Positions 6,238-63,100 of a stretch of DNA of 64,000 nt are shown in pieces (position 1 is the stretch's first letter; every line of letters begins with the position of its first letter). The position numbers were made by a program, and so were the translations under genes. The DNA lies in the IMG/VR virus record IMGVR_UViG_3300018080_000098, positions 248,001 to 312,000 of that record. One strand, given 5' to 3'. The notes under the pieces are model-generated. The model was not told the DNA's origin. It ran no database searches and saw only the letters and a program-made list of their open reading frames with translations.

Positions 6238-6255
6238 ACGTTGTATTGTTTTTCT

Positions 6256-6338: not shown

Positions 6339-6350
6339 TTAGGAGGACTT

Positions 6351-7634: not shown

Positions 7635-7722
7635 CAAGCTCCTTCTGCGACAACTCCATCTTGTAAAATAGAAGTATCAGGATTGTCACCAGGGTGGTGA
7701 CCGCTAAACAAGGAGAGTTGTC

Positions 7723-9330
7723 ATGTTTCGTAACGAGAAGTCTAACCTTCTGTTCCCACGCCTCGTTTTTCTCAAGGAGACCAAGTTCAGTAGTTGGGGT
7801 GGAGACGAGCACCGCTCCACGCGAGTCTACATTCTCGACTGGAGCAGTTTGGATGAGAAAGCGGTGAAGCAAGGGGTACGGTTGTTCCCTCGGGACCACA
7901 TTGACTGGCTGAACAATTTCCGGTTCGCTTTGCCGTACCACTACCGAAGTGAAATTCGTCGCTGCGTAAAGATGGCCACTTTGGAGTGGGAGCGTCCTCT
8001 AGGCTTCGACACCAGCATTCGGGAAATGTGTTTGGGAACGGCTACGAAGTATATCGACGTTGCTTTTAGATTGCTGGCGGACTGTCCCTACGATCCGGAG
8101 AAAGACTATTTTTATCGAGGGGATGATAGAGGCGTACTACCCTTCGCGTTGATTTATCGTTTCTGGGACGGTCAGACTGGACGAGGACTTCCCTGGTTCA
8201 AAAGTGGCTTGGCGAAGTATTGTGATAAGTGGCACCGACATAAAATAGAAACGGTCCACAAACCCTACTACCACGAACCCCTTGATGCTTTCATGGTTGC
8301 TGTTCAGCACAGCGAAAAAGAATACGCAGTAGTTCACGAAGCGCGCGAAGATGCATCAGAAGAGGCTGTAGCTGAGACTTCAATAGCAGCTTCCTGCAAA
8401 CATCTCAAACGTGTAGCAAAAACGACACCTGTTCTACCCCAAGCCCTTGGTGCGGCTAACGTGTACGAGTGGATTACCGACCCAAAATTCCTCGGACGGA
8501 AAGATGTTTTTCCGCAAAACATCAAACTACTCAGTACAGCGTTCCAGGAATACTGCCCCAACTGCGGTTATCGCCCAACCAAACACAAGGAATGCCCAGT
8601 TTGCAAAAAGGATGTTACTGAAGCTTTCGCACGCCCCTACCACGAAGTAGTAGGCGTACGAGGACAGCGGTCGGGGAACACCTTCCTCAGCGCTGTGGCA
8701 GCTACATATGTGCTACACAAGATTTTTCGTTTGCCTAGACCGCTCAATGAGCAGTTTGGTATGCCGCCCAATGTGGAGATCGAGATGACTTTCGTAGACC
8801 CACTTAAAGCAATCTGGGAGACCTTCTGGCGGCTCGTACATGAATCACAGTGGTTCGCTTCAGGAAGTTTACTAGCAAAGGATCCCAGCAACCTCAAAGA
8901 AGTTTTTCTTCCAGGATGCACCTTGGTTCTACGACGAACGGACCTCAACGAATGCCACAGAGGGGGCACGCGCGTCTTCGCTACCATCGACAGTCCGGAT
9001 TGGATTGAGAGAATAACTTCTTGGGGGTACTCCGTCCAAGATGTGTACCAAGCTCTCCGTAATAGCTTAGTAACTCTTCGTGGTAGACAGAATAAAAGTG
9101 GCACCGCTCCTCTACTGTTCCTTCTCGGATCTCCAAGCCCCAACAGTTTCCTGGGTTCCCTCAAAAAATCCTCACTAGATAACGACGACCGACTTTGGGT
9201 GCAACAGCCCACGTGGGAGGTCAATCCCTTTGTTACCATGGAGCAGCTCAGAAAAGAAGACATGGGAAACCCCGCGCTCTTCTTTAGAGACTACGGCGCT
9301 CAGATACCCGAGCCTTCTGAAGACGGCTAG
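7723..9330 (+). CDS. degenerate terminase-large-subunit ATPase paralog lacking the nuclease domain
   Basis: Colinear motifs shared with 21893-24175 (AANV.EW..FLG, GQRSG, RG.TR, ALxNSL.T.R, TWE.NP, RD.. near the end). Confidence 0.7.
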   Translation: MFRNEKSNLLFPRLVFLKETKFSSWGGDEHRSTRVYILDWSSLDEKAVKQGVRLFPRDHIDWLNNFRFALPYHYRSEIRRCVKMATLEWERPLGFDTSIREMCLGTATKYIDVAFRLLADCPYDPEKDYFYRGDDRGVLPFALIYRFWDGQTGRGLPWFKSGLAKYCDKWHRHKIETVHKPYYHEPLDAFMVAVQHSEKEYAVVHEAREDASEEAVAETSIAASCKHLKRVAKTTPVLPQALGAANVYEWITDPKFLGRKDVFPQNIKLLSTAFQEYCPNCGYRPTKHKECPVCKKDVTEAFARPYHEVVGVRGQRSGNTFLSAVAATYVLHKIFRLPRPLNEQFGMPPNVEIEMTFVDPLKAIWETFWRLVHESQWFASGSLLAKDPSNLKEVFLPGCTLVLRRTDLNECHRGGTRVFATIDSPDWIERITSWGYSVQDVYQALRNSLVTLRGRQNKSGTAPLLFLLGSPSPNSFLGSLKKSSLDNDDRLWVQQPTWEVNPFVTMEQLRKEDMGNPALFFRDYGAQIPEPSEDG

Positions 9331-9378
9331 CGGGTCCCCGTACTCATCTTGTAAAATACTTTGTAGAGGTTACCAGCG

Positions 9379-9660
9379 ATGATTCGGGAAATAGCTCCAC
9401 TACTCGTAATTATTCTTGCACTCCTGATTTATTTGGGGTACCGTTGGCGGTACCGATTTACGTGTCCTCACTGTGGTAGCTCAGCTAGGGCACGAATGAA
9501 GGTGGTGTTCAACCAGATAGACCAGAAAGGAAAAAGACACAAGGTGACCGTACCCGCAGCTGGCTGCGACTCGTGCGATCACTTCTGGACGTTGAAAAAT
9601 ACGCACGTGCGCACCACCGGAGTGATTATTCCGAAAGGTACGCAGATGCGAAGACCATAA
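9379..9660 (+). CDS. small membrane-anchored zinc-ribbon protein
   Basis: N-terminal TM helix; CPHC and CDSC. Confidence 0.55.
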   Translation: MIREIAPLLVIILALLIYLGYRWRYRFTCPHCGSSARARMKVVFNQIDQKGKRHKVTVPAAGCDSCDHFWTLKNTHVRTTGVIIPKGTQMRRP

Positions 9661-9671
9661 AGGAGAAATCA

Positions 9672-9887
9672 ATGAGCACTTACAGATGGCCCGATGAAAA
9701 CGAGGACGGCGGCTACGACGAAGGCACCGAGTGGGTCTGTTGCTCCTGTGGCTTCAGCCAGAAAATCGGCACAGAAGACATGGACCCACGAGGTTGCGAA
9801 CGCTGTGGCGGACCGACTTGCATGGACTGCTGGACTGATATTGGCTACTGCGCCAAATGTGAGCGAGAAACTAGGGACGAAGCATAA
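9672..9887 (+). CDS. small Cys-rich protein
   Basis: AGGAG RBS; four CxxC-like pairs. Confidence 0.55.
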   Translation: MSTYRWPDENEDGGYDEGTEWVCCSCGFSQKIGTEDMDPRGCERCGGPTCMDCWTDIGYCAKCERETRDEA

Positions 9888-9889
9888 CA

Positions 9890-10258
9890 ATGCTCGACCG
9901 GATGCACGAACAACTTGACCTGGCGCTGTCCATCGCCACGAAGGCCCACGCTGGTCAGGTGGACAAGGCTAGACAACCGTACATCCTGCACCCGCTGCGC
10001 GTAATGGCACAGCTGGATGACATTCAGGACAAAATCGTTGCAGTGCTCCATGATGTGATAAAGGTGATGGTGAGCCCCTCGAGCCCATGCAGGAGTTCAA
10101 CATCTTCGGTGTGTTCGCTCACTACCTCGCGGAAACCCTTCCCGACGGCAGCGACGCTCAGAAAGTCTGTCAGTCCACCTTCGAGCAAATACAAAAACTC
10201 GTGCTGGAGTGGCGCGCGTCCACTCTCGGAGAAGCTATCGTGGTGGCAGACAAACTAA
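9890..10258 (+). pseudogene. truncated HD-domain hydrolase (RelA/SpoT hydrolase-like)
   Basis: AH.GQ.DK..QPYILHPLRV..VAVLHDV, after which similarity ends and the frame turns low-complexity. Confidence 0.6.
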
Positions 10259-10296
10259 GGAAAGGCTACGATGGCAGCTAGAATTAAAGGAACATA

Positions 10297-10659
10297 ATGA
10301 GTGACCCCACCGACAACCAAACGACTCCTGAGGAGCTCTACGAGTACATCGTGAGATGTCTCCGCAAGTCTCTGGACCCACCCACGCGGGATACTATCCG
10401 CCGCGCCCGAGAAACACTCCTCAATCAGGTTGACGAGTCCACAGCTGACTACGTGAAGGTGGCGCAATCCCGTGGTGTGAAGTTCGACAGCGGTCTCACA
10501 CTGGACGTGCAGTTCCGCTACAACCGAGACCTAGAGGTGTGGGAGTTCGTCAAGCTAACACAGAGCGGTGAAATAGAGTTGCCCAAGCCACTCAAGTTCG
10601 TTGCCACCAAGTTTCTAGTAGACGAAAAGTTCTGGCAAAATGAAGATGAGACTGACTAA
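10297..10659 (+). CDS. hypothetical protein
   Basis: ORF with RBS in a co-oriented cluster. Confidence 0.55.
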   Translation: MSDPTDNQTTPEELYEYIVRCLRKSLDPPTRDTIRRARETLLNQVDESTADYVKVAQSRGVKFDSGLTLDVQFRYNRDLEVWEFVKLTQSGEIELPKPLKFVATKFLVDEKFWQNEDETD

Positions 10660-10891
10660 GCCTATCCTCGTCCGCTGGGCCAACCACCACAAGAAGGACT
10701 TCGAGCTCGGAGACCCCGAAGTGACCATCACACTTCCCGTGGGCACCGAGGTCAAGCTGGAAGCACAGTACACAATCAACTCCGGAAAAATATTCGACTA
10801 TGCTACGCTGGAGCTCTGTGACTTCACCTACAAAAATCCCTTGTCAGGAATCACCTCGAGAGGTACAATACCTGCTAGTTGCTTGGAGTGA
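10640..10891 (+). CDS. hypothetical protein
   Basis: Overlapping operon packing. Confidence 0.5.
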   Translation: MKMRLTKPILVRWANHHKKDFELGDPEVTITLPVGTEVKLEAQYTINSGKIFDYATLELCDFTYKNPLSGITSRGTIPASCLE

Positions 10892-11136
10892 GAACCGCAG
10901 TGAAAGAAGCAGAACGTTACGAGAAGTTCCTCAGAAAACGCTGTCCCGATCTCAGCGAAGAAGACCTCGCGCAAGAGCTCGAGATACTAGCGTCCATGAA
11001 TGCAGCGCAGGACATAGCGGTGTACACTTGCAAATGTGGCCGTACGCATTACGTGGAGTACGTGCCACCACCTCACGCGTACTACCCACGGAGTTCCATT
11101 TGCGCGTGTGGGCACGAGGTGGTGTTTGGAGAATAA
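10888..11136 (+). CDS. small zinc-binding protein
   Basis: CKCG and CACG; GTGA overlap. Confidence 0.5.
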   Translation: MRTAVKEAERYEKFLRKRCPDLSEEDLAQELEILASMNAAQDIAVYTCKCGRTHYVEYVPPPHAYYPRSSICACGHEVVFGE

Positions 11137-11143
11137 TGGTTGC

Positions 11144-11226
11144 GCGGCCATGGCGAAATTGGCAGACGCAGCGGGTTTAAGCCCCGCTGGAGTAATTCCG
11201 TCCGGGTTCGAATCCCGGTGGCCGCA
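11144..11226 (+). tRNA. tRNA-Leu(TAA)
   Basis: GCGGCCA/TGGCCGC acceptor, anticodon TAA at 11178-11180, long variable arm, TTCGAAT loop. Confidence 0.92.
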
Positions 11227-21892: not shown

Positions 21893-24175
21893 ATGTCGTC
21901 GACGAAGAAGCCATTCCCGAAACTGAAAAAGCGTTCCCTCACAGACTTTGGAGGGGATGCTAGGGAAGAGGCTTCCGCGAAGAAAAAGAATACACCCAAA
22001 AAGAAAGTTTCTCCCGCGTCAACTCCCACCACGAAACCGAAAGAGTCGTTCAGCACTAACATCTACGCTGCCCTCGATGCAGCCTCCGAAGTCACCGAAG
22101 ATAGCACTAAGGTACCGAGCCCCAACGAGCTCATGAAGCTCGCTATCTCAGCGGACCTCGACCCCTCCATCTTCGTCGAGCGCAGCTTCCCGGTAGCAGC
22201 CAACGTTATAGAGTGGTGTCGGAGTGCCAACTTCCTGGGCTTTTCTGGTGAGCTACGGCCTCGACAGTTCCAGGTCCTCTCGCAATTCTTCGGGGATGTC
22301 TGCTACCAGTGCTCCGATGTCCATTACGTACACAACGTCCCTGTAGATGATACTATCGGAAACGTTATCGATCGATTCGTCCTGCTTGAACATGGTGTTT
22401 GTCCTAAATGCCGACGTAATCGCACAGAGATGTTGGCAGACTGGCTATCAGATCCACGGTTCGCAGATTACAATCAGTTCGATGAAAAGCTTCAACTGCG
22501 TCCTGTACCTCCTAATGAATTTGTTGGTGTGTGGGGGCAGAGGTCTGGAAAATCCTTCACTGTTTCTACTTTTGCTGTCCCTTACATATTGCATCGCTAC
22601 TTAGCGCTCCCAAGCCCCACAAAGTATTTTGAGCAGGCTAGTAATTCTATCTTACAAGCTACGTTTGTGGCGCCTACTATTTACCAGGCGGAAGACAACA
22701 TGTGGAAGTCCTTCCGGGAAATCTATGAAAGTTCGCCATGGTTTAGAGAGATAAAGAGCCATAACATCGCGGAAGGGAAGCGTTTAGGGGTATCTCTTTA
22801 TGAAGCTGCGAAGCGTTTCATCTTTTTCCCCGGAAAGCGCATCGCTATTTATATGCAAGCTGCCAGCTCTATTACGCTGCGTGGTGCAACCAGACTTTGC
22901 TGTACCCTTGATGAGTTAGGTTGGTTTAATACTACATCTGATGGGAAGCGCCGTACAGGGGTCAAAGACGGCACTGAAATATTTAACGCGCTAGAGAACA
23001 GCTTGCAAACTATACGTACCCAAGCAAACAGGCGTCGTAGGAGTGGTGATTATAACACGCTTGATGGTTATATGCTCAACATTTCCAGCCCAACTTCAGT
23101 AGCCGACCCTATTATGCAACGGGCCACGGTAGCGGATAAGAGCCCTCGCATGTTCTACACACACTATGCAACATGGGAGGCTAACCCTCAAGAAGATGAG
23201 GATACTATCAAGGAACAGAAAGCTGGTGACCCTGAATCGCTGATGCGCGACTTCTACGCTATACCGCCCCGAGCACTCAGTCCTTTCTTCCCAAACCACG
23301 CGCTCGTGGAGCAACTCGTAGCAGATGAGACCGTAATCGAACCCCTGTTCAACTACGTTATCGATAAAGAGAGCCATACCGGTGAGCCCTCTCTTCTACG
23401 CCCCACGCCTAAAGATATCAAAGCAGACATCTTCAACGCACGGGTGCTCGCTGTGGATAACGGAGAAATCAACGATCACTTTGCTCTCTGCATCGCCCGC
23501 TATGAGCCAGAAACTGAAGGTATCATTTACGAGGAGTTCCTGGAAGTAGCTCCCTACCGAGGTTTCCATGTAGACCTCAACTGGTGCTACAACGAGCTCA
23601 TCGTTCCGCTCGTTCGCTCCTTCCAGTTCGTGCACGTAGTATTCGATCGCTGGAACAGCGCTGTCCAGGTCCTCGACCTTCGCAACACACACGATATGGA
23701 CGCGGAACGGTACACCCTCAAACTGAAAGACTACAAAGAATTCAAACACGACTTACAGGACGTGAAGATTCATTTCCCCGCAGCAGAGAAGAACCCGGAT
23801 GACCTGCTCAAAATGCGAAACGTAGCCATGCGCGCCGATTACCCCAGAGCGCACTTCCAGCTGCAACTCACTACTGTAGAGCAGTTCGGCAACAAGGCCC
23901 CCATGAAACCAGAGAACGGTACGGATGACCTGTTTCGCACAGCCGTTCTCTGCCACAGCCAAATCCGTCGCTACCAAGACGAGTACGCCAAACGAAGCCG
24001 AGGCCGTGGCCGTCGCCTGCCCGGCATGATGACAGCTGGCCTGTTCCGCGGCGCTAGCACCCGAGGAATGGGTATGACCAACCGCGGCCTCGAGGGTGGT
24101 GGTCCCAATACCGGGCGCTCCGTAGGAATGTTCTACAACAGGTCGAGCCGCAGCCCCTTCAACAGAGGAAGCTAA
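21893..24175 (+). CDS. terL: terminase large subunit
   Basis: Walker A GQRSGKS, Walker B TLDELG, nuclease AVDNG..D, VVFDRWNS, TDDL; upstream of portal. Confidence 0.85.
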   Translation: MSSTKKPFPKLKKRSLTDFGGDAREEASAKKKNTPKKKVSPASTPTTKPKESFSTNIYAALDAASEVTEDSTKVPSPNELMKLAISADLDPSIFVERSFPVAANVIEWCRSANFLGFSGELRPRQFQVLSQFFGDVCYQCSDVHYVHNVPVDDTIGNVIDRFVLLEHGVCPKCRRNRTEMLADWLSDPRFADYNQFDEKLQLRPVPPNEFVGVWGQRSGKSFTVSTFAVPYILHRYLALPSPTKYFEQASNSILQATFVAPTIYQAEDNMWKSFREIYESSPWFREIKSHNIAEGKRLGVSLYEAAKRFIFFPGKRIAIYMQAASSITLRGATRLCCTLDELGWFNTTSDGKRRTGVKDGTEIFNALENSLQTIRTQANRRRRSGDYNTLDGYMLNISSPTSVADPIMQRATVADKSPRMFYTHYATWEANPQEDEDTIKEQKAGDPESLMRDFYAIPPRALSPFFPNHALVEQLVADETVIEPLFNYVIDKESHTGEPSLLRPTPKDIKADIFNARVLAVDNGEINDHFALCIARYEPETEGIIYEEFLEVAPYRGFHVDLNWCYNELIVPLVRSFQFVHVVFDRWNSAVQVLDLRNTHDMDAERYTLKLKDYKEFKHDLQDVKIHFPAAEKNPDDLLKMRNVAMRADYPRAHFQLQLTTVEQFGNKAPMKPENGTDDLFRTAVLCHSQIRRYQDEYAKRSRGRGRRLPGMMTAGLFRGASTRGMGMTNRGLEGGGPNTGRSVGMFYNRSSRSPFNRGS

Positions 24176-24583: not shown

Positions 24584-26995
24584 ATGTTCAAAGTGAGATT
24601 CGATATGACGGAGGGGCGCTACCGCCGCGTCGCCAACCGCACCGCCGCAGTCATGCGGTCGCACAGCTCCTCCTCAGGTGCCCGCCGCAGGTACGGCACA
24701 GCTACCACAGGAGCTATCCCACCAGATAAGCTCCGCCACGCTGTAGGCTCCCTTACGAATGTCACCGCGCCAATGCAAGCAGGCGCAGACATGTCCCAGC
24801 GATACTCCCCCGTCTTCGAACGCGCCGAGGACCCGACTATCGCTGAAGATTTTATGCCTGCCGACCCCCAAACGCAGCATAAAATATTTCGCAACCTTAT
24901 CATGTTTGACCCCATTGCAGGTCCCGCCACCGAGTACTGGCGCGACCTCGCCTTCTCTCAAAATGTCATCCTTAGTGGCATCGACGACGATAAAGCCATT
25001 CAATTCTTTCAAGACGCCATCGACGCATCCGGTATCGTCCCTGCGATGCCCATGCTCCTCAGCGACTACCTCACGTTCGGTAAGTTCGTCTTCCACATGA
25101 TTTTCGATAAGAAGATGGGTTACTGGACCGAGGTCATCCCACACGACCTCGATTACGTCTCCATCAAGGTTTCCCCCATTCCGAGCCTCGACCCCATCAT
25201 CGACATCCAGCCCACACAAGACATGCGAGAGTGGGCCATCTCTTCCGACCCCCGCGTCATCGCACAACGTCGTGATGTAGACGCCGTACTCGTTAGCCTC
25301 ATGGCAGCCGGACGCCCTATTCCCCTAGCGCCCGAAAACACCATGTTCCTTCCGCGTCGAGTGTTCGCTACCGACTACTACGGTACCTCGTACCTCACGC
25401 GCATTATGCCCTTCAAAATCTATGAGAAGGCTCTCCTCGATGCATCCATCGCTGGAGCTCGTAGACGTGCTGGACCCCTCTGGCACATCAAAGTGTGGCC
25501 CGACGCTACCGATGTTGAGATGTCCGAAATCCTCGACCTCTTCTTCGCCGCAGAAGAAGACCCCATCGGCGGCAAAGTCCTCACCCGAGAAGGCGTCGAT
25601 GTTGTCCCTGTTGGTGGAGGCTCCGCAGACTTCTGGAAACTCTCTGATGAGTGGAACTTCCTCAGCGAAGCTAAGATGCACGCGTTGGGAATCAGCGCTA
25701 CCTTCTTAGACGGAACAGCTAACTACAACAGCATGGACATGATTCTGTCCACCTTCCTCGAGAAGGTCCGGTCTGTCCGTTCTTACTTTACGCGCAAAAT
25801 CATCCTTGAGAAAATCTGCCGACAGCTCGCGCAGATCCATGGCATGAAAAAGCGCTCGCAGGCAGACCTGTCCCACCGCATACGTACTAGCAGGAAAATC
25901 AATAAACGTTCAGACCCAGAGTACATGCTGCCAACTATCGAGTGGGATAAGCCCCTAGCACCCATCGCAGACCGCGACTACCTCGATATCATCAACATGC
26001 TTGATGAAGCTGGGCTTCCTGTACCCATCCGTATGAAAACTCAGGTAGCCGGTTTCGATATCGACAAAGCACTCGACTCTTTCGATTCAGACCTCGAAAC
26101 CTGGAAGAAGATTTACGAACACCGTCGTGCCAAAGCAGAGCTCGCCGCGCAGTACGGGTTCGATGAGAGTGGTGCATTCCAAGGCGGTGAGCTTGGTACA
26201 GGGCTCGGAGGAGCTGGTTTAGGCGCAGAGATTGGTGGTGAGTTGCCAGGAGGAGGCCTCCCCGGGGAGCTTCCCCCCGAAGAGGGTTTGGGTGAGCTCC
26301 CTGAGCTCGGTGGAGGAGAAGCTGCTCCTGAGCTTGGTGGTGAGGAAGCTGCTCCCGCTACTGAAGAACTTCCCCCGGCAGCACCTACTCCTGGTGCTGG
26401 TGAAGGGTTCGGAGCAGATCTGGCAGCCCCGCGCTTCAAGGCTAAGCCCCTTCCTCAACGTCTCGTGGTCAGCAAAGCTCGTATTCAAGCAGCTAACGAT
26501 ATTGTTCAGGACCTCGAGCGAATCCCCATCTGGGATAATGATGGCGCTCTCTTTGGTTTACCTCGTCGACGCGTAGCAAAAATCCTGGACCGCATTGCTC
26601 ATACAGACCCCAAAGAGAAGCGTCGCAAAAAACTCGGTAGAGCTCTCCCCAAAGAGCTCGCGAAAACAGAAGGGCTCGATCGGATGCAGGCCAACATGGT
26701 CCAATACCTCGCTATCCGACTGGGGTTCGTTCCACCCGTAGAAATTCAAGAAGAGGCTTTCGATAGCATCCGCAAGTTCATCGTTTCCCGTATGGACGGT
26801 AACGGCTTGACGAAAGCAGTGAGCAACGAGATTGTGATGCTCACTAAGATAGCTGAAGCTGGCGGACGTCGGTCCGATAGCAAGTTGGCTAAAAAGATAA
26901 ACCCTGCGTTGATTATGCCACGCTACGAAAGCGCCCTTTCCGATTCCCAGCTACTAACGGGCGTCGTCGACTCGAACCCGTTCATCAAATCGTAA
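24584..26995 (+). CDS. portal protein
   Basis: Position after TerL; DYL.FGK, YGTSYL, ALGISATFLDG.ANY motifs; Gly/Glu/Pro-rich insertion. Confidence 0.75.
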   Translation: MFKVRFDMTEGRYRRVANRTAAVMRSHSSSSGARRRYGTATTGAIPPDKLRHAVGSLTNVTAPMQAGADMSQRYSPVFERAEDPTIAEDFMPADPQTQHKIFRNLIMFDPIAGPATEYWRDLAFSQNVILSGIDDDKAIQFFQDAIDASGIVPAMPMLLSDYLTFGKFVFHMIFDKKMGYWTEVIPHDLDYVSIKVSPIPSLDPIIDIQPTQDMREWAISSDPRVIAQRRDVDAVLVSLMAAGRPIPLAPENTMFLPRRVFATDYYGTSYLTRIMPFKIYEKALLDASIAGARRRAGPLWHIKVWPDATDVEMSEILDLFFAAEEDPIGGKVLTREGVDVVPVGGGSADFWKLSDEWNFLSEAKMHALGISATFLDGTANYNSMDMILSTFLEKVRSVRSYFTRKIILEKICRQLAQIHGMKKRSQADLSHRIRTSRKINKRSDPEYMLPTIEWDKPLAPIADRDYLDIINMLDEAGLPVPIRMKTQVAGFDIDKALDSFDSDLETWKKIYEHRRAKAELAAQYGFDESGAFQGGELGTGLGGAGLGAEIGGELPGGGLPGELPPEEGLGELPELGGGEAAPELGGEEAAPATEELPPAAPTPGAGEGFGADLAAPRFKAKPLPQRLVVSKARIQAANDIVQDLERIPIWDNDGALFGLPRRRVAKILDRIAHTDPKEKRRKKLGRALPKELAKTEGLDRMQANMVQYLAIRLGFVPPVEIQEEAFDSIRKFIVSRMDGNGLTKAVSNEIVMLTKIAEAGGRRSDSKLAKKINPALIMPRYESALSDSQLLTGVVDSNPFIKS

Positions 26996-56049: not shown

Positions 56050-57534
56050 TCAAGGATAACAATCCATAGGGCAGATGGCGTAGACTTCCAGACCGTCGCA
56101 GATACCGTTGCCGCAAGTAGAGAGGCAGTCAGGCGGACAATTGTTCATCGTTTCTCCCATATCGCACGAACCGTCACCGCAATTCTGAGCACAATCGAGG
56201 CTACAGTTGCTATACGCTTCCCCATAACCAACTGCACAGATACCATCACCGCAGCTTCCGGGGCAATCCTGCTGGCAGGTCACCCAGGTTTCTGCGCCAT
56301 CGCAAAGATTGTTTCCGCAGACACCAGCACCGCAATCAGCTGGGCAGCTACCCGCGTCCTCTCCATGAATAGCCAGGCACAATCCGTCACCGCAACTGGT
56401 GCCACAATCCATAGGACAGCTAATAGGGCCTTCGCTGCCTTCGCAAGTGCCGTTGCCGCAGACGTTGGGGGGACAGTCGAAGGAGCAGTTTAGAGAATTC
56501 TCCCCGAGAGAGATCTCGCAGGTACCGTTGCCACACAGCCCGGGTCCGCAATCCTGTGGGCAGCTTTGTACATCCTCAGTGGGTTCGCACAAGCTGTTAC
56601 CGCAAACGTAGGTGGTTGGGCAGTCCTGCGGGCACGATATGGCGTTGTCGGCAAAGTTGGGATCGCAGACACCGTCACCGCAGATGGGCCACGTACAGTC
56701 TTCTCGGCACGCATCCGGTGTGGTGTCGCTATTGAAGACGCCGTTGTCGCACGCCTCGCCAGTTTCTTGAATGCCGTTACCGCAGACGGGGCTAGTGGGC
56801 TCGGTTTCGCAGACGGCGTTACAACCGTCCCCGTCGACGGTGTTTCCGTCGTCGCACTCTTCCCCAGTGTCCTGGACGCCGTCGCCACAGTAGGCCACCA
56901 AGCAATTCAGCCGACAAGCGTCGGGCTCGGTATCGGAGTTGTCGACTCCGTCGTCGCACTCTTCACCCGGTTCTTGAACTCCGTTACCGCAGAAGGGGTC
57001 GGTAGGTTCGGTTTCGCAGATGGAGCTACACCCGTCCCCGTCGACGGTGTTACCGTCGTCGCACTCTTCCCCGGTATCTTGGACACCGTCCCCGCAGAAG
57101 GGGACCTCGCAATCGAGGCGACATGCGTCGGGTTGCGAGTTGGAGTTGCTGGAGCCGTCGTCGCAGGCTTCCCCGACCTCTTGGATACCGTTGCCGCAGA
57201 CGGGGTCCGCCTCCGTTTCGCAGGTACCGGAGCAACCGTCTCCGCTGGTGCTGTTGCCGTCGTCGCACTCTTCTCCGGTGTCCTGCACACCGTCTCCGCA
57301 GTAGAAGACGGTGCAGTCGAGGCGACACGCGTCCGGTTCCGTATCGGAGTTAGCCGCGCCGTCGTCGCACTCCTCGCCCCAGTTCTGAACTCCGTCCCCG
57401 CACTCTCCTGGGTTGTCGTTCTGGTTTATGTTGTTGGCGTTGGTGCCAGCGTCGTTACCGTTCGTGAAGGTGTCTCCACTCGTACCACAGGCAGCCAGCA
57501 TCAGTACCATTAGCAGTGCAAAAATTCGTTCCAT
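56050..57534 (-). CDS. lipoprotein with Myxococcus-type Cys-rich repeats (DUF4215-like)
   Basis: Lipobox LAAC; repeats CGDG.Q..GEECDDGN...GDGC...C, then CG(N/D)G.C...E....CP.DC. Confidence 0.85.
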   Translation of the reverse strand: MERIFALLMVLMLAACGTSGDTFTNGNDAGTNANNINQNDNPGECGDGVQNWGEECDDGAANSDTEPDACRLDCTVFYCGDGVQDTGEECDDGNSTSGDGCSGTCETEADPVCGNGIQEVGEACDDGSSNSNSQPDACRLDCEVPFCGDGVQDTGEECDDGNTVDGDGCSSICETEPTDPFCGNGVQEPGEECDDGVDNSDTEPDACRLNCLVAYCGDGVQDTGEECDDGNTVDGDGCNAVCETEPTSPVCGNGIQETGEACDNGVFNSDTTPDACREDCTWPICGDGVCDPNFADNAISCPQDCPTTYVCGNSLCEPTEDVQSCPQDCGPGLCGNGTCEISLGENSLNCSFDCPPNVCGNGTCEGSEGPISCPMDCGTSCGDGLCLAIHGEDAGSCPADCGAGVCGNNLCDGAETWVTCQQDCPGSCGDGICAVGYGEAYSNCSLDCAQNCGDGSCDMGETMNNCPPDCLSTCGNGICDGLEVYAICPMDCYP

Positions 57535-57590
57535 GGTAAAATCCTCCCAAAAAATCAATGTCCCCAGTATTGACGATGTCAAGAAAGATG

Positions 57591-58085
57591 TCAAGAAAAT
57601 TGTGGTGAGGTTGCACGAGTAATGAGCCAAAGAAGCATATACACTTCCTCGCTTCTATCGAGTTCCACGGAGAATTGTTTCTTGTTGTCAGCGTACGCAC
57701 CGAAAACGCGCTCATCCGGAAAACCCTCGAAGTATACACCATGAATGGATTCTTCCGCATATTTCCCGAAAAGATCGTGAAAATCCACGTCGATTTCCAC
57801 TGGTGAGTCAACCGACACTTTGTAGTCGTGAAAATTGTCGCGAATAGTGAAAACGACCCCTCCTGGGGTACGTAGTTCCACGACGGGTAGTCTAATAGAC
57901 TTAGAAGTGTGGGTGCTGATTACTATAGGCTTCAGTGTCTTATACACCTTATAATCTGCGCCTGGGGGACAAACTGCCCACGTCAAACGGTGGAAGAAGT
58001 CGAATTGCACGTGTGCAGCTTTCTTCCACACCATTTCATCTGCAGGAACATTCTCCTTGCACCACTCTTCGAGCGTAATGGTCAT
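57591..58085 (-). CDS. hypothetical phage protein
   Basis: AAGGAGG RBS, supplied by the end of pentamer array 1, before ATG 58085. Confidence 0.65.
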   Translation of the reverse strand: MTITLEEWCKENVPADEMVWKKAAHVQFDFFHRLTWAVCPPGADYKVYKTLKPIVISTHTSKSIRLPVVELRTPGGVVFTIRDNFHDYKVSVDSPVEIDVDFHDLFGKYAEESIHGVYFEGFPDERVFGAYADNKKQFSVELDRSEEVYMLLWLITRATSPQFS

Positions 58086-58093: not shown

Positions 58094-58170
58094 CCTTGGA
58101 TTGCCTTACCAGGCGTGGCCAAGCCAAGCCATACCGTGCTCCACGGTACCAAGCACCACGCAGCCACGCC
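58094..58170 (-). repeat. pentamer array 1 (NGY-NN x14, then TCCAAGG); candidate guide ncRNA
   Basis: GGCgt GGCtg CGTgg TGCtt GGTac CGTgg AGCac GGTat GGCtt GGCtt GGCca CGCct GGTaa GGCaa; 14/14 units in phase. Confidence 0.85.
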
Positions 58171-58179
58171 CGGTAAAAT

Positions 58180-58767
58180 CTACGCCACCGCTTCAGCGTC
58201 GTCCTCGACCACCTCCCATCCAGTCACCTGGAACTTCCCGAAGGTTCCCTTCTTCGTAGGCCGGTAGTCGCCCAGCCCCACACGCTTCCCCGCAGCCTCC
58301 ACGATGTCGTGAATGAGGTTTACATCGAACACATCCTCGTCCACCTCGAGCGTGAACTTCAGCTTCCACTTGTCCAGGCGTGCCCGGTGGCGCAGCACCG
58401 CACCCTTCGTGGAGGGATTCACCACCCGGCGGCTGTCCACCTCGAACTTCTTCGTGCCAAACGAGCACGTGAGCTCCTCTACCGTCACGCCTCCCGTGAG
58501 CAGCGTCCCACTCGTTGTGGTTACCTTGTTCTTTCCCAGCTTGAAGAACTTCCCGGCCTCGATGAGACACGCCAGGATGTTGGTCCCCGGGAAGTGGAGC
58601 ATTCCCTTGTTGTCCATGTAGGCGCTCCGTTCCGCTTCCTCCCGTGGCGCGAGCTTCTTCTTGCGCGTCGGGCGGTGCCCCGCCGAGAGCTCCATCTCCG
58701 CCGCGTCGGTGAACCGGTTCATGAGTAGGGGGGTTTTTCCTTCGATTTGCACTTTCACAATGGCCAT
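58180..58767 (-). CDS. stand-alone RAMP/Cas7-like RRM protein
   Basis: Beta1 VQIEGKTPLLM, FPGTNILACL, C-terminal Gly-rich loop GLGDYRPTKKGTFGKF; no other cas genes in the window. Confidence 0.7.
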   Translation of the reverse strand: MAIVKVQIEGKTPLLMNRFTDAAEMELSAGHRPTRKKKLAPREEAERSAYMDNKGMLHFPGTNILACLIEAGKFFKLGKNKVTTTSGTLLTGGVTVEELTCSFGTKKFEVDSRRVVNPSTKGAVLRHRARLDKWKLKFTLEVDEDVFDVNLIHDIVEAAGKRVGLGDYRPTKKGTFGKFQVTGWEVVEDDAEAVA

Positions 58768-58869
58768 GGCGTCTGTTCCTTTCTGTTCTGTGATCTATTC
58801 CTCGCCTAACAATACCCCGTCCCAATGGCCACTAATCAAAGGGGACGGGCTTCGCGCAACATTGCGCGC

Positions 58870-59079
58870 CTAATCAATGCTTCTACTTCGCTGCCACGCG
58901 AAACAGCCCTCCGCGCCCACGCACCCCAGCCACAACACCCACACCCACCAGGGCAGCACAAACAATGCCAGGTAATCGTTGAACGCTACCGCTAACGCTA
59001 CCAGGAAGAGCACCGGTCCCATTCCTAGCACGGCGACAGTAACGGTAAACACCCTAAATATTTTTATCAAGAAGGTCAC
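58870..59079 (-). CDS. small membrane protein
   Basis: Hydrophobic, two TM helices. Confidence 0.5.
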   Translation of the reverse strand: MTFLIKIFRVFTVTVAVLGMGPVLFLVALAVAFNDYLALFVLPWWVWVLWLGCVGAEGCFAWQRSRSID

Positions 59080-59860
59080 CTGATGCCCAGAAACCTGCGT
59101 CCTTCAAGATAGCTTCACACTCCTGCCGATAGCCCTTCTTGAGCTCGATTACGTTCACACCCGGGTGGCGCATCAACCACAAACCGAACACGGAATTGGT
59201 AGCCACAATAAACTGCACTTTCCCAGAGCACCCCTCACGCTGCACCCACTGCCACAACGGGAGTTTGGTAGGCCAGTCCAGAACAGCGTCAGGCTCGTCG
59301 AGAAGAACTGTTGGAGGCCCCTTTTCAATAACAGGCTCGAGCAGCTCTTGCGCCATCTTGATTCTGTGCGCCCATACGTCGTTCACGTTGTTCGGGGTAA
59401 TTCTCCAATTGATGCTTTCTTCCTGCGAGCGCTGTACTAGACGCATAAAGCGTCCTGCAACCTGCTGCCCTGCAGATCCCTTGTCGGTTGCATTTATGAC
59501 ACCCTCCATCCCAAAATCCCAATCGAATCCACCTCCCACTAGCCCCACTTGTACAGAAGGGTCAAAGTACATCACAGACTTTCCATCAGACTTGATGGAC
59601 ATGTTCTTCCTGGGGGTATTTCGGAAACCGAACCCAAAGAGCTCATCAATTGACTGCTGGGTAACTGTAGAAGTTCCTCCCTGTTCGCAGTGCGTGATCC
59701 GCGCCAGCGCTTTTATTACCGTGGACTTCCCCGACCCATTCGGGCCCCAGAGCACGTTGACACACGGCTCAAAGTTGAACGTACGCCGTTTAGGGAACGG
59801 TTTCGACCACCACGTAATGGGTGGCTTGTCTCGATTTATTACCTTCAGCTGCTCGATCAT
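59054..59860 (-). CDS. ABC-type/AAA ATPase
   Basis: GPNGSGKST, SAGQ, VLLDEPD. Confidence 0.8.
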   Translation of the reverse strand: MIEQLKVINRDKPPITWWSKPFPKRRTFNFEPCVNVLWGPNGSGKSTVIKALARITHCEQGGTSTVTQQSIDELFGFGFRNTPRKNMSIKSDGKSVMYFDPSVQVGLVGGGFDWDFGMEGVINATDKGSAGQQVAGRFMRLVQRSQEESINWRITPNNVNDVWAHRIKMAQELLEPVIEKGPPTVLLDEPDAVLDWPTKLPLWQWVQREGCSGKVQFIVATNSVFGLWLMRHPGVNVIELKKGYRQECEAILKDAGFWASGDLLDKNI

Positions 59861-60669
59861 CAGTCCACCGCACAGTAGTATCCAGGCATCGGACGCTGCA
59901 GGTTGCCCTTTTTAAGCTGACGCTGCAGGTACTTCGAGATGGCGTTGTTGGTGGGAATCGCTTTGCGGGGAACGCTCTTGTTTGCCTCCAAAAGCGCTCG
60001 CAAGTCCGTCACCGCGAGCATCTCGTACTCCGCTAGCAGCTTGTCCGCTGGGTCCATCCAAGCTGTCCGAGGCTTACCACCACGGACATTTTTCTTCCGC
60101 TTGGACGCGTTCTTACCGTTGCCCTTCTTCGCCCTAGCAACAGCTTTCTTCTCTACCTTTTTGTTCATGAACGGAGACTTGGCTCCATCCCGCCATCGGT
60201 AAGCGCCCTTCGCTACTTTGACAAGCTTCTTCTCCTTGGCAAGCTTGTCGATGTAGTACCACACCAACCCGTAAGTGATGTCATTGTACATGGGCGACAG
60301 CTCCATGGTCAGATAGGTGACAATGTCCACTACCGAGTGCGCTTTTTTGGTACTGAAGAACTTGCGCGCAATGGCTTTCTTCGCGTCCTTAAAAGAATGC
60401 TCAGGAGGAGATTGAGGACGTTTGACCGCTGCCTTCATCTTTTCTACCCGTTGCTTCCCCTCCTCGAGCTCCTCCATGTCTTTCAGCTTTTCCAGTGCTT
60501 GTGTTACTGCAGTGTACACGCCACCTGTTTTTACAAGCTCGCGCTGAGCCTGCTCAAGTATGCGCTTCTGCTCCACCATCAGTTTCTGGAGCTCCTCACT
60601 CTGCTTGATGAGGAGAGCCCTCGTGTGGACGATCGCTTCCGGTTCTGCTGCCTTCTTTTTTCGAGACAT
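59860..60669 (-). CDS. coiled-coil plus two winged-helix-like DNA-binding domains
   Basis: KLAKEKKLVKVAKGAY and RQLKKGNLQRPMPGYY wing motifs. Confidence 0.5.
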   Translation of the reverse strand: MSRKKKAAEPEAIVHTRALLIKQSEELQKLMVEQKRILEQAQRELVKTGGVYTAVTQALEKLKDMEELEEGKQRVEKMKAAVKRPQSPPEHSFKDAKKAIARKFFSTKKAHSVVDIVTYLTMELSPMYNDITYGLVWYYIDKLAKEKKLVKVAKGAYRWRDGAKSPFMNKKVEKKAVARAKKGNGKNASKRKKNVRGGKPRTAWMDPADKLLAEYEMLAVTDLRALLEANKSVPRKAIPTNNAISKYLQRQLKKGNLQRPMPGYYCAVD

Positions 60670-60749
60670 TAATAATCACCTCCGAGAATTGTTTCTCAGT
60701 GATACCAACCCCCACTTACGTTGTCAAGAAAATAATAGGAGGGAATAAG

Positions 60750-60806
60750 CCTTGCGTTGCACCGCCCAGGCTGACAGTGCTACGGTGCACCATAGCGCAC
60801 GTGGCT
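60750..60806 (-). repeat. pentamer array 2 (11 units, ends CGCAAGG)
   Basis: 8/11 units are NGY-NN; starts at the stop of the upstream gene. Confidence 0.6.
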
Positions 60807-61962
60807 ACCGTTTCGCTACACGTTCCGTCTTTTCCCATACACGCCACCGAAGATGAACGCCGTCCACCATCTCCATCCGAGCCCAGTGTACCCGCTTTTT
60901 CGGACCTTCCTTCCAACCGGTGACCCACTCCTTCTCCGCTTTCTTGATCCACGTCGGCAGCGTCGGAGACATCGGACCCGTTTCTCCCTTCAGCCACACC
61001 AGGCACTGGTCTGCCGGGATGTGCTTCTGCACAGCCGTCGTCCAGAAGGAATACTCGGTGCAGCGAGTCAAGAAACGAAGCTGCTCGATGAAACCGGTGA
61101 GACGGCTCTTCAACGACCGCGCAGCCTTGAAGTCCTCCTGCGTAGCCTCGTAAGGCGTGTACTCTCCCTCGAGCTCCACACCGTCCACTTTCGCCTCGAA
61201 GGCCCACACCTTGATAGCCTCGTCCTCACCTACCTTCTCACTCTTCGGCCACTCCGGCGGCTTAATGTCGAGCTCCTCCCGCAACCGCTTCACCTCCGCG
61301 CGCAAAAATCGAAGCTCGTCCTCCAACCGCGAAATAGCAGCCTTCGCCACCAGATAGTACACCCCGTAGAAAGAAGGCCACCGCATCGGGTGTACCAGGT
61401 ACTGGAACCGCAACTCGTTCGCCGCACCGCTCAGCTTCTCGAACACGTCGTTCGGCAAGCCCGTCGGCATGATGTCCACCGATTCCCAACCCTTGTACCA
61501 CTTCCCCGTCACGTCCTGCAGCAGCATCGCCCGGTAAGCTCCCACCTCAGCATCCGTCGTCCCGTCTTCCTTGGTTTTCGCTTGGATAACATTCATATCC
61601 TCAATACGAATACCGAATGAGAATGCTGCTTTGTTGGAGGTGAGCCCACTCAAACGACCGTGCCGGTTCTCCTTCGACGTGACCCACTCACCCTCACGTT
61701 TCGTGGACGCGCGGCGCGATTGGTACTTTGGCAGATTCACTACCACCCGGTTCTCTACCAGCGGCGTGAGAAAAGCTGCCAGGTCCAGGTCGGTTACCGG
61801 AACACCATCCGGGTCTACCCAGGCTACTCCGGGCTTCCGCTTGTCGAGGTTGTACCCCCACGCATCCAGTAGCCGTTTGCAGAGGACGCGCATGTCCTCC
61901 TGTCTGTTCTTGACGATGTCCAGGTCCCGAGCGTCGATTGTTTTTCTTTCTGACGTTACCAT
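60805..61962 (-). CDS. hypothetical protein
   Basis: True start probably ATG 61962 (MVTSERK); the longer ORF reads through arrays 3 and 4. Confidence 0.65.
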   Translation of the reverse strand: MVTSERKTIDARDLDIVKNRQEDMRVLCKRLLDAWGYNLDKRKPGVAWVDPDGVPVTDLDLAAFLTPLVENRVVVNLPKYQSRRASTKREGEWVTSKENRHGRLSGLTSNKAAFSFGIRIEDMNVIQAKTKEDGTTDAEVGAYRAMLLQDVTGKWYKGWESVDIMPTGLPNDVFEKLSGAANELRFQYLVHPMRWPSFYGVYYLVAKAAISRLEDELRFLRAEVKRLREELDIKPPEWPKSEKVGEDEAIKVWAFEAKVDGVELEGEYTPYEATQEDFKAARSLKSRLTGFIEQLRFLTRCTEYSFWTTAVQKHIPADQCLVWLKGETGPMSPTLPTWIKKAEKEWVTGWKEGPKKRVHWARMEMVDGVHLRWRVWEKTERVAKR

Positions 61963-61985
61963 GTTCTCTGTCTCCTGTTGACTAT

Positions 61986-62042
61986 CCTTGCAATGCCTTA
62001 GTGGGCATAGGCTCGCTTTGCCACTCCCAGCCTGAGCACACT
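61986..62042 (-). repeat. pentamer array 3 (11 units, ends TGCAAGG)
   Basis: 7/11 units are NGY-NN. Confidence 0.55.
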
Positions 62043-62068
62043 TCGTATTACTATCTTTACAAGATGAA

Positions 62069-62170
62069 CCTTGGACTACGATACGCTGCCACGCATTAGA
62101 CGCCATCGCAATATATTGCGCTACGATGCCTTGCACTACTTGGCGTCACCACACTCTGCAACACTCAACC
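62069..62170 (-). repeat. pentamer array 4 (19 units, then TCCAAGG)
   Basis: 16/19 units are NGY-NN. Confidence 0.8.
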
Positions 62171-62176
62171 AAGAAA

Positions 62177-62563
62177 CTACTCTTCTTCAATGCGCTCCGG
62201 CAAAGCGTACGTGTGCTGCGCCCAGATGTAAGGCTTCAGCAAACTGGCTACTCGTATGTACTCAGGATTTTCCTGCGCCCACTTTTTAGCTCGTTTGGTT
62301 GCCTGCTCGAAAATGCTTTGCGCTTGCCTGTATGTAAAAGTGAGTAGGACTTCGTCGTCACCATCGTGATCGATTGCTTTTTGTGCTTCCTCCAGAACAA
62401 TTAAGCAATCCAGGCAGATAGGTGAAACCAGATACGCACCACTGAACTTGGTGGTACTTTCGTTGAAACGTCTGTCACATTGGGAACAAGTCAGACCGTT
62501 CACTGAAGGGAACCGTTGCTCTCGTGGGACCTCTTCCTTCCGTTCGTAGCTCCATTTGTACAT
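62177..62563 (-). CDS. hypothetical protein with CxxC pairs
   Basis: CSQC and CLDC; RBS from the end of array 5. Confidence 0.6.
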   Translation of the reverse strand: MYKWSYERKEEVPREQRFPSVNGLTCSQCDRRFNESTTKFSGAYLVSPICLDCLIVLEEAQKAIDHDGDDEVLLTFTYRQAQSIFEQATKRAKKWAQENPEYIRVASLLKPYIWAQHTYALPERIEEE

Positions 62564-62571
62564 AACAAACT

Positions 62572-62648
62572 CCTTGCAGCGCTTTACTCCACTTCACACT
62601 AGCTAGCCACACACCGCCGAGCTCCACAGTACTTCGCCGGGCGACGCC
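62572..62648 (-). repeat. pentamer array 5 (15 units, ends TGCAAGG)
   Basis: 14/15 units are NGY-NN. Confidence 0.8.
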
Positions 62649-62651
62649 AGG

Positions 62652-62939
62652 TCAGTCTTTCGACAACTCCAACGGAACACACGTGTCCACACACTGCTCA
62701 AAGCACTTCTTGTGCTTCTGCAGCACCTTTTCTTTGTAGCGATCTTTCAGTACGGATTCGGTAGGGAGGTCGAAATAGTAAAGCGCACTGATCACGACAG
62801 CCGAGCACAGGATTTCGAGGAAAATAACACGCCAGCCTATCCCGCCCTTCTCGCTGAACCAGTTGTTCAGCAGAGCTGAAAGCACGATTACGCCCATGCA
62901 GATACTGACACCCATCACGATGATTTCGTTGTGCGTCAA
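62652..62939 (-). CDS. small membrane protein
   Basis: Two TM helices; RBS from the end of array 6. Confidence 0.55.
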   Translation of the reverse strand: MTHNEIIVMGVSICMGVIVLSALLNNWFSEKGGIGWRVIFLEILCSAVVISALYYFDLPTESVLKDRYKEKVLQKHKKCFEQCVDTCVPLELSKD

Positions 62940-62947
62940 AACAGACT

Positions 62948-63014
62948 CCTTGCCTCACCGGTCCACGCTCCACCGAAGCTTGCCCCACGCAGCCCCGCCA
63001 CTCCGGGCGATGCC
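62948..63014 (-). repeat. pentamer array 6 (13 units, ends GGCAAGG)
   Basis: 10/13 units are NGY-NN; two of the exceptions are GGA. Confidence 0.75.
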
Positions 63015-63028
63015 TGGTGCGTTTATTT

Positions 63029-63100
63029 CCTTGCCAAACCATACGTGACCATACCATTCCGCGGGTTGCGGTTCCGAGACGAGCGGCGCCACTCCGGGCC
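63029..63100 (-). repeat. pentamer array 7 (14 units, ends GGCAAGG)
   Basis: 9/14 units are NGY-NN; three of the exceptions are GGA. Confidence 0.7.

Follow-up and report, generated by a model that had tools for sequence, protein, structure and literature searches.

VIPR (Viral Interference Programmable Repeat) systems, described in two 2026 bioRxiv preprints (10.64898/2026.04.26.720920 and, for the structures, 10.64898/2026.04.26.720927, PDB 36pp) and represented by the type II systems of Escherichia phage SUSP1 and of the Pseudomonas fulva prophage, associate a Vipr protein with vrRNAs. Vipr is a minimal RAMP comprising a single RRM, a G-loop and a thumb. The vrRNA genes are tandem YNNGG (or YNNNG/NNNGG) pentamers, at least 4 and typically 9-16 units, next to vipr on the same strand, and for type II an invariable, structured 3' tail is described, which is a pseudoknot in the SUSP1 clade. 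Targets follow a 1-nt-skip rule with at least 80% match of the NN letters, the skipped base being the codon wobble base, and are found on either strand in mobile elements, without self-targeting. An accessory vap gene may lie next to vipr, and the vrRNAs are expected to be expressed as ~100-nt RNAs that co-purify with Vipr and repress targets. More distantly, the backbone subunits of class 1 CRISPR-Cas systems (Csm3/Cas7 of type III-A, Cas7 of type VII, Cmr4) also polymerise along a guide RNA with fixed periodicity.

We have analyzed a 64,000-nucleotide stretch, hereafter the window, of an uncultivated 350-kb phage (IMG/VR record IMGVR_UViG_3300018080_000098), in which a preliminary description had noted seven minus-strand intergenic pentamer tracts and a solo RAMP/Cas7-like protein, proposed to form an RNA-guided system reminiscent of VIPR. 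The observation was confirmed, as the seven coordinates are exactly the 3' ends of in-phase pentamer tracts on the minus strand, each ending in CAAGG. In the register YNNGG the tracts are A1 (58173-58094, 16 units), A2 (60799-60750, 10 units), A3 (62030-61986, 9 units), A4a (62173-62129, 9 units), A4b (62128-62069, 12 units), A5 (62651-62572, 16 units), A6 (63017-62948, 14 units) and A7 (63098-63029, 14 units). The tract described as ending at 62069 contains an internal CAAGG at 62133-62129 and is therefore probably two arrays in phase, which gives eight rather than seven. CAAGG is itself the last repeat unit and not a separate end signal. Of 100 units, 81 have Y at position 1 and G at position 5, whereas 13.6% is expected from composition (pooled binomial 7e-52). 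The units fitting were 15 of 16 for A1 and A5 (tail probability 1e-12 each), 9 of 9 for A4a (2e-8), 11 of 14 for A6 (7e-8), 9 of 12 for A4b (2e-6), 9 of 14 for A7 under the strict criterion (2e-5), 7 of 10 for A2 (7e-5) and 6 of 9 for A3 (4e-4), the last two being weak on their own. The full GG is present in only 41 of 100 units, so that the consensus is YNNNG/NGY rather than the strict GGY. A scan of both strands of the whole window found tracts of this strength only in this region and none on the plus strand, while twenty Markov simulations gave 0-1 per window, and no further array was found in the 4.7 kb beyond the window end. A1 starts 6 nt after the stop codon of ORF 58180-58767, or 10 nt in the GGYNN register used previously.

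This ORF (58180..58767, minus strand) encodes a stand-alone ~20-kDa protein of 195 aa that we identify as a Vipr homolog. A profile of 116 homologs hit the solved SUSP1 Vipr protein (36pp_D) over its full length, covering 180 of 190 profile positions, with E=2.4e-14, and the single sequence gave E=2e-4. The AF2 model (pLDDT 86.4) was compared using Foldseek and the top 50 matches were Csm3, Cas7 (including type VII Cas7) and Cmr, the best at E about 1e-7, with a TM of about 0.5 but only 10-15% sequence identity. The fold is the same as that of these Cas subunits, with an RRM core, a thumb and a glycine-rich loop. The protein also matches PHROG 4652, a family of unknown function. The SUSP1 residues H17, R138, D177, W178 and R179, which read the GGY motif, align to N17, R128, D167, Y168 and R169, all invariant or nearly invariant in the family. 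Four of the five are identical or of like kind, and the G-loop motif GD(W/Y)RP and the thumb arginine are conserved. H17, which reads the first G in SUSP1, is replaced by Asn, and this may relate to the relaxed first G of the present arrays (only about 50% conserved, a YNNNG type mentioned as an alternative in the preprint), although this link is an inference.

To determine whether such arrays accompany this protein family, we examined 80 related IMG/VR loci (numbered with the prefix L). Arrays were found next to homologs in 71 of them, with 171 arrays on the strand of the gene and 3 on the other. CAAGG lies at the 3' end of 117 of 159 arrays, against 23 at the 5' end and 11 at random positions. 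Between orthologous arrays, NN letters differ at 8 of 94 positions and scaffold letters at 41 of 141 (p=1e-4), indicating that the NN letters are conserved between related phages while the scaffold drifts. The view that the tracts are compositional or slippage relics without function could draw on the weakness of A2 and A3 and on the failure of TRF to call the arrays, but it is refuted by these comparative data, together with the pooled periodicity and the presence of orthologs with conserved NN letters at syntenic sites. A class 1 CRISPR-Cas system is not supported either, since TRF found no repeat array with a period of 25-80 in the window, and none of the eight proteins encoded around the arrays has a Cas family match in Pfam, nor do the six of them also scanned in PADLOC. 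In addition, there is no Cas1/Cas2, Cas10 or large subunit, the period is 5 nt rather than 6 nt, and the guide is non-contiguous. We also considered the protein-sponge RNAs of the Csr/Rsm type (CsrB, RsmY), in which short G-rich motifs (GGA) are likewise repeated many times in a non-coding RNA, some overlapping Shine-Dalgarno sequences. This option was rejected because a pyrimidine always follows GG here, which excludes GGA, because the spacing is a strict 5 nt and not in hairpin loops, and because no Rfam match was obtained.

Several features distinguish this locus from the SUSP1 system. The 40 nt downstream of the eight arrays showed no conservation and no Rfam family, so that the only constant element is the last unit CAAGG and there is no invariable structured tail or pseudoknot. 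The arrays are not in one array but sit singly or in pairs between protein genes over 5 kb, the guides are conserved between related phages rather than hypervariable, no evident vap gene is shared across the clade, and the carrier is a 350-kb phage.

We next looked for targets under the published 1-nt-skip rule, in scans made at this skip length only and without shuffled guides as controls. The NN series of A7 is CC GT GC TC TC AC AA GC AT AT CA AT TT AA. The 20-base gapped pattern of its first 10 units hit at least 80 viral contigs where about 0.05 are expected. All hits are at the motif IIALVDEATG of P63C-domain proteins, in one frame with the skipped base at the wobble position, and the NN match is 22-26 of 28. 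The NN series of A1 is CG GT TG GG TT AC GG AC AT TT TT CA CT AA AA AA, of which units 1-11 are identical in L094, whose Vipr is 83% identical. A1 matches the codons KKIVPVKPHTR near the start of a ~36-aa basic protein found in prophage switch regions and in bacterial chromosomes. In this case 19 of 21 metagenome hits and 9 of 9 genome hits belonged to one tiny-protein family, and an eleventh unit that had not been searched also matched in many of them. However, although 11 of 11 5' units match, the 3' units CA CT AA do not, and the whole-guide match is 69-78%, below the 80% criterion of the preprint. The A6 series is CA AT CC GT GG TG GG AA TC GG GT CC GA AA, and its tentative target is the Walker A region QIPVGCGK(T/S)GV of an HTH+ResIII helicase-like protein (23 of 28). 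No target was found for A2, A3 or A5, and an 18-base scan with A4a gave only chance-like hits, in 3 groups, so that only three of eight guides have candidate targets. Matches lie on both DNA strands, antisense for A1 and A7 and sense for A6, and the target genes sit in lysogeny or switch regions. Within the window plus 4.8 kb (68.8 kb), the best self-matches at skip 0, 1 and 2 equalled those of shuffled controls, so that no self-target was detected there.

Guide changes in relatives track target polymorphisms. The guide corresponding to A1 in the relative L093 carries TA where the present one has TG, which mirrors the His/Tyr dimorphism of the target family. The L093 ortholog of A6 matches 17 of 18 NN letters and reads AC (Thr) where A6 reads TC (Ser), the found target being GKT (AC), which mirrors the GKS/GKT alternation. 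It remains possible, though we think it unlikely, that the system is a real VIPR system whose true targets are unsequenced competitors, the matches to P63C, the tiny protein and the helicase being chance hits amplified by family size. Chance hits do occur (2 of 21 in the metagenome scan, 3 of 5 for the A6 core, and the 3 groups for A4a), the 3' ends of A1 and A7 mismatch, and no hit comes from the phage's own sample. Moreover, a hit to an abundant conserved family counts statistically as one event, and taken singly A1 (about 1-2 chance hits expected per scan) and A6 (2 related hits among 5) are only moderately significant. On the other hand, three independent guides each hit a conserved coding motif with the skip on the wobble base, starting at their first unit, and flanking units that had not been searched also match (CG for A1, CA AT for A6, TT or AT for A7). 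There are also two cases of guide-target covariation. The joint chance probability is of order 1e-2 or less.

Taken together, these data lead us to conclude with good confidence that the locus is a VIPR system. The earlier interpretation is thus supported: the protein is a RAMP, VIPR systems exist in the literature as had been indicated, and the idea that the NN pairs spell a non-contiguous target is supported by the matches of A7, A1 and, tentatively, A6. What the analysis itself establishes is the Vipr-type RAMP, the vrRNA repeat grammar of the eight arrays, the association of such arrays with this protein family, and the match of three guides to external genes under the published code. The functional part is inferred by homology with the characterized SUSP1 system, namely that the arrays would be transcribed with their operons, that one Vipr protomer would bind each pentamer and sequester the (G)GY letters, that the NN dinucleotides would pair with double-stranded DNA, skipping every third target base, and that the filament would then block transcription of the target. 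Because the skipped base falls on the wobble position, each guide would in effect recognize a conserved peptide motif rather than one DNA sequence, and the phage would thus silence genes of resident prophages (P63C-domain proteins of temperate phages in the case of A7) or of the host during infection. An antisense action on mRNA is very unlikely. A1 and A7 are complementary to the mRNA of their targets and the closest CRISPR folds are the RNA-targeting type III Csm3 and Cmr, but A6 has the sense orientation and the homologous SUSP1 system binds dsDNA and works on either strand (10.64898/2026.04.26.720920).

The arrays might alternatively be cis-acting sites, Vipr polymerising on the polycistronic mRNAs of its own phage and controlling translation or stability of the neighboring genes, with coincidental external matches. 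All arrays are indeed intercistronic and on the coding strand, and five guides have no known target. In A1, A5 and A6 the terminal CAAGGAG is the Shine-Dalgarno sequence of the next gene, 6-7 nt before its start, and A1 folds into a long conserved hairpin (z=-3.7) directly after the vipr stop codon. We consider this reading improbable, since the in-frame match of A7 to at least 80 contigs of one protein family is very unlikely by chance, since guide changes track target polymorphisms, and since a pure protein-binding scaffold would not need NN letters more conserved than the scaffold. In addition, A2, A4a, A4b and A7 are not followed by a ribosome-binding site. The two roles are nevertheless not mutually exclusive. 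A more speculative and rather doubtful possibility is that a lytic jumbo phage keeps a hard-wired, heritable set of guides as RNA-guided counter-defence, to shut off lysogen-expressed genes of resident prophages and of the host, that is P63C-domain proteins, the ~36-aa basic protein next to CI-type repressors and the HTH+ResIII helicase. If so, these unannotated gene families would be exclusion or defence factors, and the embedding of the guides in mRNAs, with the last unit overlapping the next ribosome-binding site and A1 self-masked as a hairpin, would couple guide loading to phage gene expression.

The description of the RAMP as solo holds for the wider clade, as no neighbor is conserved across 86 loci, but in the closest relatives a putative HTH-like gene and an ABC/SMC-type ATPase gene travel with vipr, preceding it both here and in three close relatives. 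Here, the candidate accessory gene at 59054..59860 (minus strand) encodes a 268-aa P-loop ATPase with Pfam hits to SMC_N, AAA_23, AAA_21 and ABC_tran covering the N-terminal P-loop only, and it lies upstream of vipr in the close relatives L090, L091 and L093 but not in L001/L002 or the wider clade. The second candidate, at 59860..60669 (minus strand), encodes a 269-aa protein with a weak AbiEi-like winged-helix match (Pfam AbiEi_4, E=0.003; PADLOC AbiEi, 4.5e-6), and a gene of similar size (259-309 aa), putatively its counterpart, precedes the ATPase gene in L090 and L093. Orthologs of A4a, with conserved NN letters, and of A5 are present in L093, and A4b, of the YNNNG type, contains a palindrome at 62120-62107. 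Arrays syntenic with A2 in L090 and L093 are more regular and also end in CAAGG followed by the motif TTCTTGACA. At 60698..60730 (minus strand), a promoter-like site TTCTTGACA-N15-GGTATCACT heads the HTH-ATPase-vipr-A1 unit, a role inferred from sequence alone. The motif occurs only three times in the window, always on the minus strand (60730, 57597 and 57585), and it also follows the syntenic arrays in L001, L090 and L093.

To examine the pentamer repeats, the intergenic regions between 58094 and 63098 were read on the minus strand, where they are built of pentamers. In the register YNNGG every tract ends in the unit CAAGG, and these ends coincide exactly with the seven positions (58094, 60750, 61986, 62069, 62572, 62948 and 63029) of the preliminary description. 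The long tract ending at 62069 contains an internal CAAGG at 62133-62129, and we therefore count eight arrays, all on the minus strand: A1 (58173-58094), A2 (60799-60750), A3 (62030-61986), A4a (62173-62129), A4b (62128-62069), A5 (62651-62572), A6 (63017-62948) and A7 (63098-63029). A pyrimidine at position 1 and a G at position 5 were found in 81 of 100 units, where 13.6% is expected (pooled binomial 7e-52). A1, A4a, A5 and A6 are individually very strong, A4b and A7 are good, whereas A2 and A3 are weak on their own. Position 4, the first G of GGY, is G in only about half the units, and the local consensus is therefore YNNNG, or NGY as first proposed. A scan of both strands of the 64 kb found such tracts only in this region and only on the minus strand, while Markov simulations gave 0-1 per window, and the 4.7 kb beyond the window end hold none. 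The arrays were missed by TRF, because two of five letters are free, and TRF found no CRISPR-like array in the window. A search of Rfam, including hammerhead ribozymes, returned no match, and blastn of the 7-kb region against INPHARED phages returned none either. A reading of the arrays as a CsrA sponge was rejected since GGA never occurs in register. The observation that had prompted this study was thus upheld.

The ORF at 58180-58767 (minus strand) encodes a 195-aa protein with no Pfam family but with 139 homologs among metagenome proteins, all unnamed. A profile built from 116 of these homologs hit one solved structure, 36pp chain D, the SUSP1 Vipr protein, at E=2.4e-14 over the whole length, and the single sequence reached E=2e-4. 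While AF2 run on the single sequence gave a pLDDT of only 39, the model obtained with the alignment had a pLDDT of 86.4 and a pTM of 0.81. Foldseek comparison of this model with the PDB returned only RAMP backbone subunits at the top, namely Csm3 of type III-A, Cas7 of type VII and Cmr (E about 1e-7, TM about 0.5, 10-16% identity). The residues described as holding the two G's and the Y in the SUSP1 structure (10.64898/2026.04.26.720927) align to residues of the present protein, with R138 corresponding to R128, D177 to D167, W178 to Y168, R179 to R169 and H17 to N17, and all are invariant or nearly invariant in the family. H17 is one of the two contacts of the first G, and by inference its replacement by Asn may go with the relaxed first G of the repeat.

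To determine whether protein and arrays travel together, IMG/VR was scanned for relatives of the 195-aa protein, which confirmed 307 stretches encoding them, and 80 loci were retrieved. Of these, 71 carry at least one (G)GYNN array, with 171 arrays on the strand of the gene and 3 on the other, mostly directly flanking the gene. Among 159 distinct arrays, 117 have CAAGG at their 3' end, against 23 at the 5' end and 11 at random positions, and the terminal unit is therefore a clade feature and not merely a ribosome-binding site. Nothing beyond CAAGG is conserved among the eight arrays studied here. No neighbouring or accessory gene is shared across the clade, the neighbours being ordinary replication and recombination genes, although in the three closest relatives an ABC/SMC-type ATPase gene and a gene of 259-309 aa precede vipr, as they do here.

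Two preprints from 2026 describe VIPR, in which a phage-borne minimal RAMP polymerises with one protomer per YNNGG repeat of a ~100-nt vrRNA, hides GGY and presents NN, binds dsDNA with one skipped base per NN, usually the wobble base, and represses transcription of competing phages, satellites and prophage regulators. Seven types are reported, some with YNNNG repeats and with different array architectures. The resemblance to VIPR-type systems suggested in the preliminary description was therefore correct, and its interpretation of the locus as an RNA-guided system built on a RAMP protein and pentamer guides is supported. Taken together, these data indicate that the locus is a VIPR system, with a relaxed repeat and with guides dispersed between the genes of a 350-kb phage as variant features. 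The homology of the protein, the grammar of the repeats and their association across the clade come directly from the sequence comparisons, whereas transcription of the arrays, their binding by the protein and repression of the targets are inferred. Natural targets of VIPR are known for few clades, and this locus adds a clade of several hundred phage-borne Vipr genes with a relaxed repeat, a CAAGG end unit and no structured tail.

The NN code was then examined by comparing orthologous arrays, which exist at syntenic sites in related loci whose Vipr is 75-83% identical (L093 and L094). Over 47 units aligned by hand, in stretches chosen by eye, NN letters differ at 8 of 94 positions and scaffold letters at 41 of 141 (Y1 36%, G4 36%, G5 15%; Fisher p=1.3e-4). 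The NN series of A1 units 1-11 is identical in L094, although six scaffold letters changed. Guides of distant clade members are unrelated to these, and only those of the related loci L093-L095 resemble them. The NN letters thus carry the selected information, being stable within a phage lineage and variable between lineages, and their retention under purifying selection while scaffold letters drift is direct evolutionary support for the code.

To look for targets, the guides were first compared with the phage itself, and no self-match was found in 68.8 kb at skip 0, 1 or 2. The scans for external targets covered A1, A4a, A5, A6 and A7. The first ten NN of A7 at 1-nt skip (20 specified bases) matched at least 80 viral contigs, where about 0.05 hits are expected, judging from the 12 hits of a 16-base pattern. 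All matches lie antisense to codons for IIALVDEATG, just before the P63C domain (PF10546, PHROG 2384) of ~345-aa proteins, some of which have an N-terminal Cro/CI-type HTH. The frame is open in 79 of 80, the skip falls on the wobble base and the whole-guide match is 22-26 of 28. P63C genes occur in 63 deposited temperate phages, and in Gordonia phage Petra the gene lies in the lysogeny module beside the integrase and repressor and matches A7 at 22 of 26.

For A1, the full 13-unit pattern had no viral hit, and its 8-unit core had 12 hits that do not extend and look like chance. A ten-unit pattern gave 21 metagenome hits, of which 19 belong to one family and two are unrelated, which calibrates the chance level. 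The same pattern gave 9 genome hits, all in that family, from four Algoriphagus, Arthrospiribacter, Balneolaceae, Tenuifilaceae, a Chloroflexota MAG and Leptolyngbya. The site is antisense to codons 8-18 (KKIVPVKPHTR) of an unannotated, very basic protein of 33-39 aa (pattern MAKT..GKKIVPVKP[HY].R...HRRSTPN; proteins P0121-P0203 of loci L108-L142, outside the window) with no Pfam or NCBIfam model, and the first unit CG, which was not part of the search, matches the Arg codon in many of the hits. The 3' units of A1 do not match the target. The family has a His/Tyr dimorphism at this site, and the guide of L093 carries TA (Tyr) where the present one has TG (His). The family is found in several bacterial phyla. 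In four ENA contigs the gene follows a CI-like repressor in a temperate-phage switch region, and it also occurs in Marinitoga camini viruses and in chromosomes. Its neighbourhood in bacterial genomes is not conserved, and its ~385-aa neighbours are related neither to each other nor to the 385-aa gene of the window.

The A6 10-unit pattern had no viral hit, but the core shared with L093 (17 bases) gave five hits, three of which look like chance. The other two are the sense strand of the Walker A region LQIPVGCGKTGV of a MerR-HTH+ResIII protein, where two upstream units left out of the search also match, giving 23 of 28. This guide has TC (Ser) where the target and the guide of L093 have AC (Thr). 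The A5 10-unit pattern had no viral hit, and the A4a 18-base pattern gave 3 unrelated groups, which is chance level. The guides do not converge on one element, either in 153 kb around A1 targets or in 758 kb around A7 and A6 targets, and the target genes were found neither in the window, nor in 4.8 kb of the same contig just beyond its end, nor in the other vipr loci retrieved. Taken singly, A1 and A6 are moderately significant and A7 is strongly so. Taken together, the wobble register, the start of each match at the first unit, the extensions into unsearched units and the two covariations give good support for the published code acting here and for targets in resident prophages or the host. 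Of the three predicted targets, two are widespread gene families of unknown function that sit in prophage lysogeny modules (the P63C-domain proteins and the ~36-aa basic protein), and, if confirmed, they would be candidates for superinfection-exclusion or regulatory functions that a large lytic phage has reason to silence.

The likely expression of the locus can only be inferred from its anatomy. The motif TTCTTGACA, a -35-like box with a T-rich lead, occurs only three times in the 64 kb, all on the minus strand (60730-60722, 57597-57589 and 57585-57577), and is tandemly duplicated at 57597/57585. One copy follows A2 and heads the unit formed by the HTH-like gene, the ATPase gene, vipr, A1 and a 164-aa gene, and two copies follow that unit, whereas A3-A7 lie between the genes of the preceding unit(s). 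The same motif follows syntenic arrays in related phages, so it is a likely phage promoter. In A1, A5 and A6 the last unit overlaps the Shine-Dalgarno sequence of the next gene.

A1 (58173-58094, minus strand) is also a long imperfect hairpin (dG -41.6 kcal/mol, z -3.7), whose outer stem is kept in L094 through compensatory double changes (GUGGC/GCCAC to GUCAC/GUGAC). The 3' units that miss the predicted target are the ones that pair back to the 5' units. The other arrays are no more structured than shuffled sequences. A perfect palindrome, CGCAATATATTGCG, lies inside A4b (62120-62107, minus strand), and a similar GC-clamped palindrome is located just upstream of vipr (58869-58853, minus strand), followed by a second hairpin (58849-58815). 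The palindrome upstream of vipr is conserved in the related loci L090-L092, and these elements could be terminators, processing sites or protein-binding sites. A6 and A7 share the same first 12 nt (CCCGGAGTGGCG; 63007-62996 and 63098-63087, respectively, minus strand), and A5 shares CGCCCGG. In A1 and A7 the first unit takes part in the target match, so this may reflect related targets or a common 5' end signal.

The window belongs to the 349,793-bp viral contig Ga0180433_10000009 (IMGVR_UViG_3300018080_000098), identical copies of which occur in two other samples. Two ORFs, at 7723-9330 and 21893-24175 (plus strand), match the same large-terminase PHROG (17415), the first only over its C-terminal part (E 6.5e-17) and the second at full strength (E 2e-93). 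The portal follows at 24584-26995, and four tRNA genes lie at 1540-11226. Directly downstream of the vipr unit, the ORF at 56050-57630 (minus strand) is listed with 526 aa, although from its ATG at 57534 the product is 494 aa. Its N-terminus, judged by eye, looks like a lipoprotein signal, and the rest contains 3.2 copies of a 207-nt repeat encoding Cys-rich, DUF4215-like modules (a faint Pfam mark on a relative). This ORF is syntenic in the related loci L001/L002 and L093. About 2.2-2.9 kb beyond the window end (positions 1823-2617 of L008, a stretch of the same contig), on the same strand and upstream of the arrays, a metallo-beta-lactamase-fold protein matches the anti-Pycsar Apyc1 family, a known phage counter-defence gene lying close to the VIPR guides.
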